Below are positions 5,517 through 63,182 of a stretch of 64,000 nucleotides of DNA, piece after piece (the stretch's first letter is position 1; each line of letters starts with the position of its first letter). A model generated the notes under the pieces. That model ran no database searches. It had not been told where the DNA came from and saw nothing but the letters and a program-made list of their open reading frames with translations. The DNA comes from Asterias rubens (Eukaryota): positions 2,480,001 to 2,544,000 of the forward strand of contig NC_047064.1 in assembly GCF_902459465.1 (NCBI RefSeq), given 5' to 3'. The position numbers and the translations under genes were made by a program.

Positions 5517-6143
5517 GTAAGAAAGAATCAATTGTGTATTCTAAATTGTATCATCTTGGAGGTTTTGGGTCTTGGATATAGTAACCAAATGACAACTTGC
5601 ACGTACGACAGATTTCTTTTTGCCAGAAGTATTTGGCACATTGTGGGATTTAAAGGCAGTGTCCACATTGGTAAATGTCAAAGTTCAGTACATGTGTGCT
5701 CCTCATTTGGTGTGCCTTTAAAATCGGGATTTTCCGTAATCAAGAGAAGACTTTTTAACTCTTCATAGATGTGCAAAACTAAAACTAAAGTAACAGGTCA
5801 TCACTTTTGGTTCCGTTTATACTACAACTATTTGTGCTGTTCTAGTAACATGTACATAATTTTTTTGCCTTTGGGAAAAATCAGAGAAATTGTGATTAAG
5901 TAGCCTGAAACATGTACACAGGCCTGATACTCCATGGAGGAAACGAAGGCGATTGCCTCCATTTCCCCTGGTCATTGCCTTGGTGCCCTTGAAATGCTCC
6001 AGTACAAATTACAATTACATCATAGGGTGCCCTTTACCAAGGAGAAAATACCTTGGTGCCCTTGCCCTTTCAAAAATGAAGCATACAGCCCTGCATGTAC
6101 ATAGGTCAGCCTGTGTGTACATGTACTTGATCAAATTGTCTTA

Positions 6144-6271
6144 GGCCGTGTCCGAAACGGCGACTTCGGCTACAGCTACGGCTAGATCGCGCGCGTCTGC
6201 TATTCTTCAACACTGGTAGACGCGCTGATCTAGACGTAGCTGTAGCCGAAGTCGTCGTTTCGGACTTGGCC
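6144..6271. mobile_element. Young PIF/Harbinger-type MITE with TTA target-site duplication
   Basis: TTA|GGCCGTGTCCGAAACGGCGACTTCGGCTACAGCTAC...GTAGCTGTAGCCGAAGTCGTCGTTTCGGACTTGGCC|TTA; CpG-rich. Confidence 0.85.
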
Positions 6272-8343
6272 TTACTTTATCCAAGGGGTAAACATCATGC
6301 CTGTTGTAAACAGCGCCCTCTGCTGCTCAAATATGTTTATGATTAGTGTTCAATTCACCTTAACATTATGAGTAATGTTATCAGCAAACCCTGAATTGAC
6401 TGACAGTATGTATTTGTATTATGAATAAAATGGACGTACATATGTACTTCATGAGAACATTTTAACAAATCTATCACTTGAAACTGAAATTTCACACAAA
6501 AAAGCAGTTGGCTTTGATAAATGACTGACGACTCCTTCTAGAATGGTTAACATTTTTAACTGATTTAGGGGATATGGTTAGAAGGATAATTCTGGATCGA
6601 ACAAAAACAAAATTGACTACAGCAGGACTGGATTAACGTACCTGTGCTCTGAGCTATCTAGCCTTGTGTTGGCGGTCTACCTGCTTTGTCAGGGATCACA
6701 TTCACTTTAACGTTACAATCTGGGGAGGGATCACCTTATGGGGATGCAACTTTTTGTTTCAAACATTACGTGATAAACCACTAGGGAAATGGACTGGGTA
6801 AATTTATTAGACATGAGAAGATGAGGCTGTAAACTACTAGTCTACTTAGCGGTAGCGGGTGTTTCTTACCAGTGTATGCAGTGGTTTGAACTAATAAACA
6901 GATATATATCATCAACTGAAATTAGATTGAAAAGTTCTTGGACTGATAAAAACAGCTGTAAAACATGGGCATTAATGCTAAAAGAGTTCTGTTTCATGAA
7001 TTAGACTTTATGATTAGCTTTCTGCAAACATTTTGTAGTTTGAGAATTCCAAATTACTTTGTCATTGACTTGTGTGCCGGAGTAAATTAATTCATAAACA
7101 CTCATTATTTATCACACACAACAGGTTCTGTGAAGTTTTTTATGGATTCAATTAAATTCAATTGTTTAATTGTTTTATTCTACACACATATATACAATAT
7201 ACAGTGAAATTCACTTTGGCTTTCGAGTCTAAATTTTTTTTAAATGACATAAAACCCTCCACAAAGGCAAATGATTAGTATTCAAGTGGTTGCTTTCATT
7301 CAAGAAGACAAACTTATTGATTAATCAGAAGTACAGGGCAGTATGTAGCTGGACAAGTTACTTTAAAACTTACATTAATTTTGGCTTTCAGAGCTCATTC
7401 AGAGCTAAAAGAATAGACTCAATTTTCTGAAGAACAAAAATAGCAGAGCAAGTTTTTTCAGAACTAAACATGGTGAATTGTTATCAGAGCTAAATTCTAA
7501 ACTGGATGGATTGCTATCTGAAATAAATTCTACTACCTGGCAGTAAATAAATAGGACCATTTTTTTTTCCTAACTGAATTCCAACCAGTGAAAGTGGATA
7601 ATATCACACGATGTTATCGTAATCCAAAGCCTTGTTATTGTTTGCCATCATCCCTATTGTTATTAAAGCGATGTTATTCTACACTTGTCATAACATTTGT
7701 TGTCCTTCATGGAATCGCAAACACTCTGAGGAATGCGGACAAGGTTGTTTGGTCTAACTGTCATTAAATGGGGCATGGGGTCACTGTTCAGAAAATAGTC
7801 AGATACCTGACTCTGTTATTTTGTTGTTTCTGTAATTCTGACAGCAGATTGTCTCGGCCCAATCAGGCCCGTATGCTTCATTTTTAGAAGGGCAAGGGCA
7901 CCAAGGCAGTTTCTCCTTGGTAAAGGGAATCCTATGAATGAGGATATTGTAAGATTCAACTGGAGCATTTCAAGGAAGGCAATGGCCTTTGTTGCCTCCG
8001 TGAAGAATCAGGCCTGCCCAATTTCATGGCTCTGCTTACCATAAGCAAAGAATCGGTGCTTACAGAAGCAGGGAAATCTTTACTTGTGTCAAGCAAAATT
8101 TCATGGCCTAGCAGGGAATTTTTGCTTGTTACTACATTGTGCATTGTACATTTTGCAGAAATTTGGCGTTTGCCGAGCAAGCCAAGAATGGCGATCGTAA
8201 GCGCAGAATTCGGCGATTAACAGATCCATGAAATTAGGCCCAGATTATTAAACAGATTCCTATATGTATTAATATATTGGCACTTCAAATTTCAGCGTTT
8301 CGATGTTCAATATAACATTAATTAATCCTCATTCTTTAATGGT

Positions 8344-8691
8344 TTAAGGATTCGGGTACTTTTTCAAAATGTCCACAGATTTACATTAAACTTACAGGGT
8401 TTGAAGATAATGATAGTGGAAAGCTTCCCTTCAAATATGACTAACTGAGGTTGTGCAGTTTTTGAGAAATGAGTAAAACAAGCCACAAAATAATTGTCGT
8501 AAAATCCCATTAACCAGTTATGATATTATACCAAAACCATAGCATAACTATACTCATTTCTCAAAAACTACAGCACCTCAGTAAGTGAAATTTCAAGGGA
8601 AGCTTTCTACTATCATGATCTTCCAACTGTGTAAGTTTAGTGTAAGTGAACATTAAGTTTTGTGTTAGGAAAAAGTACATAGACTCTTTAA
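8344..8691. mobile_element. MITE family C (TTAA-flanked, AGG(A/G)TTCGGGTACTTTTT-type TIR)
   Basis: ttaaggattcgggtactttttc...aaaagtacatagactctttaa with long imperfect internal inverted arms. Confidence 0.7.
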
Positions 8692-9020
8692 ATAGTTCTC
8701 AATCCGAGAAAGAATGACATCATCGTGTCGTCTTATTGAATGGTCCTTGCTTTCGTTAAAACAACTTGAAGTGTCTGTAACTGGGGCAAGTTTACATTTC
8801 ATATTTGATGGATCATTTTGGATCAGAGCTCCGTAACTGAAGTACAGAAGTACTTGACAATTTAATTAAGTTCAGCTATGGTTTACAGAACATGGACAGG
8901 TTTTTTGATCGCCAAATCCGTATCGGGTGGTAGCCAATAATGGAGTAAATCCCCGTAACTGGGTTTACGCACATTGGCGCCAAGGGTCCTGGTGGTAGTT
9001 AATTTACTCATGAAGCAGTT

Positions 9021-60851: not shown

Positions 60852-61810
60852 TAGGATTAATCCTTGCGTTTCGTGAAAACGGCTTCAGGTACCTTCTCTC
60901 ATCCTAGCTACATTTTGTAACACGCTGTTCAGACAATCATGGTCCAATGTCATAGAGCTTCTCACACAGCAAATCTTGCCTGACAATTTTCTGCTTAGAA
61001 AAAATGGGGAGGATGCCAGTCAAAGATAGTACATTTGGAATGGTATTTTGGCAGATGACCTTATTCTAGTAAGCATGTTGTACTTTTCTGTGCCGTTCTT
61101 TGAAATTGGGCCGAGATGTCTAATATCTTGGTCATTGTATAGTAAGTGATTGAAAATGAAGTTGGAGCACCGATAACTTACTACCATTTTATCACAGGCT
61201 GATTGAGTTATTGACGCATAAAAGTGGAATTGGGAGAAAGTTGAATTAGAGCATTGTACCTTTTTGTGAAGTGAAGCAGTTCTAAATACAGCGTGTCTCG
61301 CATCGCGCTGCGACCTCAAATCCTATCGTTGCTGAACATTGGACCATAACTTTACCCCAGGGTGGATAACGGTTAAGTTTACATTAGTGTGATATGTCAC
61401 TGCATCAGGTGGAGCTAGCTGAGTCTGTGTTTACTTGGCTTAACTGTACTTATTCAACATCAAGACCCCGGAGACAGAAATGTATCCTTGGGATGGTGGG
61501 ATGGGAAGGGGGTGTTTAACCTATGATGTTTGCGATCTCCTTGTGAACATTTCCACGACCTTGACATCAATGTTTGCTTTTGGGAGTTCTAATTTCAGGC
61601 CTGATACTTCAAAGAGGCAATGAGGGTGATTACCTCCATGCCCCCTTGTCATCATTGCCTTGCTGCCCCTAAAATGCTGCCAGTAGAAATTTACGAATTC
61701 CTCATAGGGTCCCCTTTAGCCGAGGAGAATGTGCCTGGGTGCCCCTTGCCTTTTTAAAAACGATCCCCTTTGATGTCGATCTTCTTTCTCTCTTATTTTT
61801 CTGCATGCAG

Positions 61811-61962
61811 TGATAGCCACCGAGATGTCAGTTTGGGATGGAGTTGTGGTGACTCCGAGTGAGAAGGCTTACGAGCCACCTGCGGAGGGCGTCAAGGATG
61901 AAGAAGGGGAGGAAGCCACTGCTGAGGAGGCTGGGGAGATGGAGACCGTTGAGTCACAGTAG
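61811..61962 (+). CDS. ILF2: ILF2 last coding exon (acidic C-terminal tail, TAG stop)
   Basis: Long pyrimidine tract plus gcag acceptor; phase matches exon 29617-29704. [50 protein letters not shown] contains the conserved [13 protein letters not shown] motif. Confidence 0.95.
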
Positions 61963-62061
61963 AGAGTCATAATGAGACAGGTGGGTATGTTGGGGGAGGG
62001 GGGATTCAATCCATCATTGGGTAACAGGTGGCTACTCTACTTTCCTGTATCTTCCCAGGTA

Positions 62062-62240
62062 AACTGGGATAATGGGCGTAAAAACTTCATCAGTGGGCAT
62101 TGTAAAGAACTGGAATAATGGGCGTAACAAGAACATCAGTGGGCGTAGTAAAGAACTGGAATAATGGGCGTAACAAGAACATCTGTGGGCGTAGTAAAAA
62201 CTTGGATAACAGGCATAATAACAGCATCAGTGGGCGAAAA
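62062..62240. repeat. 46-bp tandem repeat (about 4 degenerate copies) just downstream of the ILF2 stop
   Basis: aactggaataatgggcgtaacaagaacatcagtgggcgtagtaaag, starts at 62062, 62108 and 62154. Confidence 0.9.
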
Positions 62241-63182
62241 ACAGACGGGTTTCATTGTCTGTTTATATCAGATGTAGGCTTAGAATTATGTTGACAATTA
62301 ACAACACACAGTTAACCTGTAAGACAATCTACGGCCACCTACAACACCTCAAAAGGTTTCCATTCCATATTAAATAACCCATTTTTGTCAACAAGACAAT
62401 TTGATAAACTAGAATTCGCTTGCATTTCTGATGGCTGTTAATCCTTTTGAGACCATTGATTTCGGTTTATTCATCACAAAACGCCCGAACAATGCTAAAA
62501 TATTGGTAAGTTCTTCAATCAAAGTTTGTCAGTAAAAACCTTGTAGCCGGCTGCTATAGGCATTTTGGCACAAGCCACTTGTGGCCGCTACCGTCTCTAA
62601 AGGTTTTCTTTTTGTTTTTTACTTCATAGGCCTATGTCTGCATTGAGTAAGGCTATCTTAAGTTACCGTCATCATTTTGTCACGTAGAAGTTTTGATACA
62701 AAATAGTTTATTGTTTGGTTCAACCATCAAACGCATTGCAGTTTTAAATGTCTCAGTCAGCTGGTTTTTTTTGTGTTTAAGGAATTTGTTATTTTGTTTT
62801 AATAGAAGGCCTAAATGTTGTACATGTAGTGGTAGATTGTGCTCATATTTGTGTTAGGTATGCTCTTACTGCATTGTGTGGTCTGCTGAACTCTGTGAAT
62901 CAATGGGGTAAACCACCTAGTGATGGCAATTCTACTTGTTATGTAGTTTCATAAGATAATAAGTAGCATGTATTTCTTTGCTTGTGTTTCTTTCTTATGG
63001 GGGGATTAATTATAATTAATTTTTATTTACTTTCCTTAACAGTGATGCCTTTGGCAAAACGTTTTTGTAAGAGAGTTAAATACTAGCTTTGACGACACTG
63101 CTCAATGGGGGGACTACTATTGGCATTTTGTGAACTTTATTATGTACGAATGGAATCAACACTTTTAATTTCTTATTTGGAC

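Follow-up and report, generated by a model that had tools for sequence, protein, structure and literature searches.

Why does the palindromic octamer TACATGTA occur 23 times within 64,000 nt of the genome of the sea star Asterias rubens, and what process has written it there? The stretch concerned (NC_047064.1, positions 2,480,001–2,544,000, hereafter the window) is part of a genome of 417.6 Mb, and the octamers had been proposed to be excision footprints of a Tc1/mariner-type element. The present analysis indicates, with a probability of about 70%, that TACATGTA is a scar left at the donor site when a cut-and-paste DNA transposon of the TA-duplicating Tc1/mariner type is excised. This explanation is the best one because insertions of six nucleotides anchored at TA are found in several repeat families, the flanks of the sites are Tc1/mariner-like, and the expected minor repair products are present. 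These parts of the original prediction stood, while no CA...TG element was found in 334 kb and no occupied allele was seen.

The octamer is present in exactly 23 copies, all at the starts listed earlier, in DNA with a GC content of 38.6% (about 36% had been assumed). Chance expectation was derived from 100 dinucleotide-preserving shuffles, which average 1.26 copies and never exceed 4, and from Markov models of orders 1–6, of which orders 1, 2, 3, 4 and 5 predict 1.4, 1.9, 2.6, 5.0 and 8.4 copies. Among the commonest octamers of the window, only TACATGTA is neither repeat-derived nor low-complexity; the sequence contexts of its sites are all distinct (23/23), and 19 of the 23 sites lie in DNA without a repeat match. 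The excess is a feature of the whole genome and not a property of this window, since 91,620 copies are present in the 417.6 Mb (1 per 4.6 kb), and 18 random 10-kb loci (180 kb) contain 58 copies, with a range of 0–13 per locus. In the 244-kb sample comprising the window and these 18 loci, 81 copies were observed against 8.7 expected, and TACATGTA and TAGGCCTA rank highest of all TA-NNNN-TA words. Counts of TACATGTA per 10 kb are over-dispersed (variance/mean 3.6), with no further clustering below 1 kb once the regional density is fixed. Repeats hold 16% of the sites and 19% of TA, so that the octamer is distributed in proportion to TA content and is not depleted in repeats. The excess of one-mismatch variants in the 244 kb is about 31, compared with 72 for exact copies, a ratio that under constant input implies a build-up spanning roughly 0.1 substitutions per site.

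The origin of the octamer by insertion is evident from sister copies of repeats, which read TA where the site reads TACATGTA, with TA left on both sides. Two sources of such copies were used: window positions 23840–24040 were aligned with the 29 best genomic matches of a tRNA-derived short interspersed nuclear element (SINE), and an all-against-all comparison was made of a 334-kb set comprising the window and loci L001–L048 (270 kb beyond the window). The tabulated alignments contain TA-anchored insertions of six nucleotides (+6) at several positions and in several repeat families. Insertions of TACATG relative to sister repeats, involving further TA positions and further families, were found at L007:3949, L039:1355, L010:6619 and L037:615, and the +6 insertion at L003:387 is seen in 33 of 44 alignments. 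A strict filter for private insertions returned no six-bp events and proved too stringent.

Three insertions had been singled out earlier in the window. The one at 23932 is indeed six nucleotides longer than the 29 sister SINE copies, with an ancestral TA having to be presumed at a place where the sisters read TT. The one reported near 23879 is a +6 at gggcTAgata with coordinates 23880–23887, and it is present also in six other copies among the 29 best matches (four intact and two with one letter changed). These copies do not cluster, and the shared insertion may descend from an old SINE subfamily or may mark a hot spot; it is not countable as an independent event. At 56512 the claimed insertion is seen relative to a local direct repeat of 15–16 nt, which is weak evidence; the site is a doublet of TACATG followed by TACAATGTA.

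Insertion spectra were obtained by genome-wide pattern searches at two fixed TA sites, one in a SINE and one in a miniature inverted-repeat transposable element (MITE). At the SINE site AGA-TA-GCT, 90 insertions of 1–12 nt were found, 14 of which are exactly CATGTA. About six more are its derivatives (CCTGTA, CAATGTA, CATGTA+ATGTA, CTCGTA+CATGTA, CATGTA+CGTA and CATTCTGTA), three are classical +4 forms (CATA once, TGTA twice), and the remaining insertions represent slippage of TA, GATA or A. The MITE site, with unfavourable flanks, has 389 insertions, the first 100 of which include three CATGTA, one CATGTT and one GGCCTC. Insertions of the CATGTA type thus make up about 22% of those of 1–12 bp at the favoured SINE site and about 4% at the unfavoured MITE site, and the designation of excision repair as a major local indel source was too strong.

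For the analysis of flanks, each TACATGTA site was collapsed to its single TA. In the sample, A at position -3 and T at position +3 have frequencies of 0.56 and 0.53, compared with 0.31–0.32 around all TA; T(-1) and A(+1) are under-represented. With tandem-like flanks excluded, the frequencies are 0.51 for A(-3) (p = 3e-4) and 0.46 for T(+3) (p = 0.011). Genome-wide, A(-3) is present at 44,789 and T(+3) at 44,485 of the 91,620 sites; after removal of 11,156 sites preceded by ATG, 41.8% carry the flank signal, compared with 31% around all TA. Of the 23 window sites, A(-3) is present at 8 and T(+3) at 15, so that 19 show one or both. The flanks of TACATGTA therefore agree with the target preference of the Tc1/mariner superfamily and follow a ANNTANNT-like pattern, the palindromic consensus ANNTANNT being that of the Sleeping Beauty SB100X target (PMC8934666).

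Other products of variable repair are present beside the dominant +6. The classical Tc1 scars TACATA/TATGTA, invoked in the original prediction, occur as minor products and are weakly enriched (203 against 168.5 expected, both strands summed). TACAGTA/TACTGTA of the Sleeping Beauty type is not enriched in the sample (46 against 41 expected). A +7 form, TACAWTGTA, occurs 19,580 times genome-wide, compared with 8,210 for a reversed control and about 9,480 from the Markov model of the sample; for TACASTGTA the corresponding values are 9,553, 9,059 and about 6,260. The extra base of the +7 product is thus mostly A or T, which fits remnants of the form CAT+TG or CA+ATG and hints at element ends CAT...ATG. 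The sites of the window are listed below by window coordinates, with no strand assigned.

6118–6125: TACATGTA in unique DNA, with T(+3)
9504–9511: TACATGTA in unique DNA, with T(+3)
11144–11151: TACATGTA with A(-3) and T(+3)
12129–12137: TACATTGTA, +7 variant class, with A(-3) and T(+3)
13059–13066: TACATGTA with CATA directly after it, which can be read as +6 and +4 scars side by side
17360–17368: TACATTGTA, +7 variant class
17533–17540: TACATGTA with T(+3)
18221–18228: TACCGGTA, rarer palindromic class, +6 (CCGGTA) at TA relative to 9 of 17 sister alignments
23880–23887: TACATGCA, decayed +6 at gggcTAgata of the tRNA-derived SINE
23932–23939: TACATGTA, +6 in the T-arm-like part of the SINE copy that also holds the 23880 site, in 0 of 29 sisters
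29199–29206: TACATGTA with T(+3)
30531–30538: TACATGTA immediately adjoining the end of a MITE copy with TTAA flanks
31451–31458: TACATGTA with A(-3)
39228–39235: TAGGCCTA, second palindromic class
41736–41743: TACATGTA, +6 relative to 2 of 3 sister alignments
41917–41924: TACATGTA with T(+3)
42071–42078: TACATGTA with A(-3)
45234–45241: TACATGTA with A(-3)
47305–47312: TACATGTA with A(-3)
47511–47519: TACAATGTA, +7 variant class
47538–47545: TACATGTA with A(-3)
50358–50365: TACATGTA
51714–51721: TACATGTA, present also in independent run X16 (contig over 51640–52533, 0 gaps)
51784–51791: TACATGTA with a decayed second unit, CATGTG, after it; found in the X16 contig as well
53642–53649: TACATGTA with A(-3) and T(+3), present also in the X15 contig over 53624–53942
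54264–54271: TACATGTA followed by CATTA
56102–56109: TACATGTA followed by CATA
56512–56526: doublet of TACATG and TACAATGTA, a +6 beside a +7, with a copy of a 15-nt local direct repeat on either side
62627–62634: TAGGCCTA, second palindromic class
62821–62828: TACATGTA

The proposed mechanism would comprise three steps. An element would insert at TA and duplicate it; upon excision, the transposase would cleave the non-transferred strand a few nucleotides within the element, and the flanks would consequently keep TA with CA... on one side and ...TG with TA on the other; end joining would then seal TA-CA|TG-TA. The agent would be an element of low copy number and long activity. Less firmly, it may have CAT...ATG ends and be cut with a 3-nt stagger, in which case the CAT overhangs could pair through their central AT to yield TACATGTA; such pairing would lead to one uniform product and would explain the dominance of +6. 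Scars would in turn be favoured new targets, their second TA having A(-3), and this would contribute to doublets and (TACATG)n arrays. By a rough estimate, the present count requires no more than about 0.004 fixed scars per genome per generation (91,620 sites × a decay rate of ~8 × 5e-9 per generation, with an assumed substitution rate of about 5e-9 per site per generation). A few tens of active copies would be enough on the same rough reckoning, and such a family is not expected within 334 kb.

Several observations weigh against this interpretation. In the window and the further 270 kb, no TA-flanked inverted-repeat element with CA...TG (or CAT) ends stands out; the absence of an intact copy from the window, reported earlier, is thus borne out, and the high-copy CA..TG family suggested as a source was not found in the 334 kb either. 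In the same set, TA-flanked inverted repeats of the CA type are no commoner than those with other dinucleotides, and a scan of repeat-boundary clusters revealed no TA|CA family. The one Tc1-like family with readable ends, non-autonomous and of about 140 copies, mostly of about 1.07 kb and with TA duplication (283 ends genome-wide), was rejected as the source, since its termini are TA|AAC...GTT (AA...TT), which is unusual; the family, represented by L011:6881–7984, has inverted repeats of 206 nt and carries a C-terminal transposase fragment. The scar analogous to this AA...TT family, TAAATTTA, is not enriched. Contigs of four sequencing runs over 51000–56999 included three sites without gaps, none of them occupied, and the pieces of a diverged organism (organism B) spanned no site; these contigs were swamped by repeats and gave no polymorphism call at the six sites there. 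A metagenome contig over 56436–56624 has nine unexplained gap letters, and a contig search with two open reading frames of the window gave no return.

The genome nevertheless encodes transposases of the Tc1/mariner superfamily. Matches to DDE_3 (Tc1-type) number 93, with open frames of 427, 375 and 357 amino acids, and those of 427 amino acids are located at C15:14245006 and C98:1972. Intact DDE_3 genes are placed at C15:14245006–14245449, C98:1972–2415, C1:27439151–27439594 and C16:9605227–9605700. Of the nine best DDE_3 matches, three fall in a single 300-kb stretch of one chromosome, at C15:14.11–14.41 Mb, and the frame on the small contig C98 scores identically. This grouping, together with the C98 frame, could reflect a recently active Tc1-type element hopping locally.

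Units adjoining the octamer also tell against simple excision. Genome-wide, ATG precedes 12.2% of TACATGTA sites and CAT follows as many, compared with 2.3% for TA in general, and this excess exceeds the prediction from independent second hits. The A(-3) that a scar supplies to its own second TA accounts for a part of it only. The 16 CAT-followed sites of the sample continue as CATG (9), CATA (3), CATTA (3) and CATTG (1); the four in the window continue as CATA at 13059 and 56102, CATTA at 54264 and CATGTG at 51784. CAATG is a further continuation, and the doublet at 56512 likewise belongs with these sites. Likewise, TAGGCCTA has G at -1 and C at +1 and differs in this respect from TACATGTA.

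Comparison with characterized transposons shows a further discrepancy. Tc1 of Caenorhabditis elegans, whose excision footprints were reportedly described by Plasterk in 1991, resembles the inferred agent in TA duplication, CA...TG ends and scars consisting of TA plus terminal dinucleotides, and its +4 forms TACATA/TATGTA recur in the sea star as minor products. Unlike in the nematode, +6 outnumbers +4 in the sea star by roughly 4–5 to 1, with both dinucleotides kept, and the scars have built up until the word is in 10-fold excess genome-wide. With Sleeping Beauty, too, end joining yields a single dominant 'canonical' scar. Its target consensus matches the A(-3)/T(+3) of the sea star, but its scar, TAC(A/T)GTA, is a +5 and the word is not enriched here. 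Excision of Tc1 in C. elegans leaves +4 in 78% of cases (PMC12632400), and that of Passer leaves 0–4 bp (PMC9976928). In rice, excisions of DNA transposons (Mariner/Stowaway and others), seen as polymorphisms between species, are mostly messy, being perfect in 8 of 94 cases, with deletions and filler DNA common (PMC4423477); the scars of DNA transposons are recorded in the genome sequence there too, but they are heterogeneous, and the sea star has one invariant dominant product. A main scar size of +6 is thus unusual beside the +4 of Tc1 and the +5 of Sleeping Beauty, the departure lying in the repair product and not in the defining chemistry. No paper describing a word excess of the TACATGTA kind was found.

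Among the alternative explanations, an artefact of composition, CpG decay or repeat families is refuted by the shuffle and Markov expectations, the unique contexts and the sister-copy alignment. A Markov model of order 6 does expect 18.4 copies in the window, but it already includes the motif's own 7-mers; shuffles and orders 1–5 expect 1.3–8.4, and the enrichment to 23 survives such backgrounds. A CpG-decay origin, which had been named as the outcome that would overturn the original prediction, does not explain the excess, the putative precursors TACACGTA and TACGTGTA being scarce in the window (2 and 0 copies). All contexts of TACATGTA are unique, whereas another enriched palindrome, TATGCATA, is repeat-borne. 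Birth and decay of (TACATG)n microsatellites through replication slippage is very improbable. Such arrays exist, and four exact double units are present in the 244 kb, but none of the 23 window sites is an exact head-to-tail double; single units stand at plain TA, with sister copies lacking a prior CATG, and slippage cannot create the first unit. It is just as hard to credit that TACATGTA is a selected protein-binding palindrome, such as a transcription-factor or insulator site. The word is a perfect palindrome, its density differs by region, and in oomycetes the octamer is a MYB-type site (PMC11134190). Against this stand its appearance as an insertion within decaying SINE and MITE copies, its spread over repeats and unique DNA according to TA content (16% against 19%), and its decay by point mutation, with a one-off excess of about 31 beside 72 exact copies.

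A process that targets TA without any excision could also write CATGTA units, for instance if a domesticated transposase or nuclease broke DNA at TA and the gap were filled by templated or polymerase-driven synthesis, with one or several units per event. In favour of such a process are the failure to find a source element in the 334 kb, the very uniform product, the adjacent ATG or CAT at about five times the background, and the 913 occurrences of the 16-mer GTACATGTACATGTAC. We know of no mechanism, however, that gives these specific letters. The CATA, TGTA, CAATGTA and filler variants resemble variable end joining of CA/TG remnants, the ANNTANNT-like flanks match the target choice of a transposase, and an element of low copy number is not to be expected in 334 kb anyway. 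Writing of the units without excision is therefore considered rather unlikely.

Besides TACATGTA, a second dispersed palindrome of the TA+4+TA form, TAGGCCTA, behaves similarly. It occurs 27,776 times genome-wide, compared with 1,864 for its reversed control, and 16 times in the sample against 1.4 expected, dispersed over 22 mostly unique contexts; evidence of its insertion from sister copies consists of the single GGCCTC event at the MITE site. The third enriched palindrome, TATGCATA (20 against 3.6 in the sample), was rejected as a scar because it is the interior of a high-copy repeat; in the window it is found at 13638, 25424, 27718, 30860, 48246 and 54628. As an extension of the excision reading, it is possible, although doubtful, that the element is 'self-sealing', having CAT...ATG ends and a 3-nt stagger (or CATG and a 4-nt stagger), with self-complementary donor overhangs that re-anneal; TAGGCCTA and TACCGGTA would be produced in the same way by GGC- and CCG-ended elements. 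If so, excision would be clean, uniform and almost harmless, allowing very high turnover with few resident copies, and (TACATG)n arrays would be seeded through re-use of the element's own scars.

Cut-and-paste activity of this kind normally leaves no countable trace. If the octamers are excision scars, the genome would contain about 80,000 fixed, datable marks of past transposon positions, from which earlier integration preferences and the regional accessibility of germ-line DNA could be mapped across the genome. They would also show, as a natural record, how a defined double-strand break is mended in the germ cells of sea stars, one product being dominant, and would offer a concrete origin for a hexanucleotide microsatellite.

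Several other repeats were considered as possible sources and rejected. Words such as CAGGTTGTATGG, with 20–25 window copies, had the appearance of a mariner-type MITE end but belong to a tandem array of a 64-bp unit at about 22.5–23.9 kb. This array (about 22480–23860, about 20 copies) derives from the 5' part of the adjoining downstream tRNA-related SINE and yields most of the top-count octamers of the window. TAGGATTAATC, considered as a possible GG...CC end of a MITE, lies within a repeat. A very abundant MITE, with 93 ends in the 334 kb, has TTAA-type ends and was discarded as a TA/CA source; it is about 380 bp long, has ends TTAAAGGCAGTGGACAC and a TTAA-type target, and occurs in the window at 443, 3740, 25092, 30543, 47925, 54309–54688 and many more places, as well as in L001–L048. 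A contig of organism B that spans the copy at 54306–54688 lacks about 400 nt there. Inverted structures at 14.07–14.46 kb and 20.36–20.72 kb are copies of another TTAA-type MITE, and repeats ending in CAGGCCTG are without TA flanks. The excess of CAGGCCTG (11 against 0.8 expected) is explained by a repeat family beginning with CAGGCCTGATACTTCA, located at 2032, 5919, 8016, 9783 and 61596.

The window shows no clear host gene. At 55783–55854 and 56385–56460 there is a match to an Rfam tRNA model (39 bits), uncalled by ARAGORN, which is the head of a tRNA-derived SINE, together with an inverted partial copy about 500 bp downstream. An open frame of 328 amino acids at 58128–59114 on the minus strand matches zf-RVT weakly (E = 8e-4, short of the curated cut-off) and is probably a retroelement remnant.

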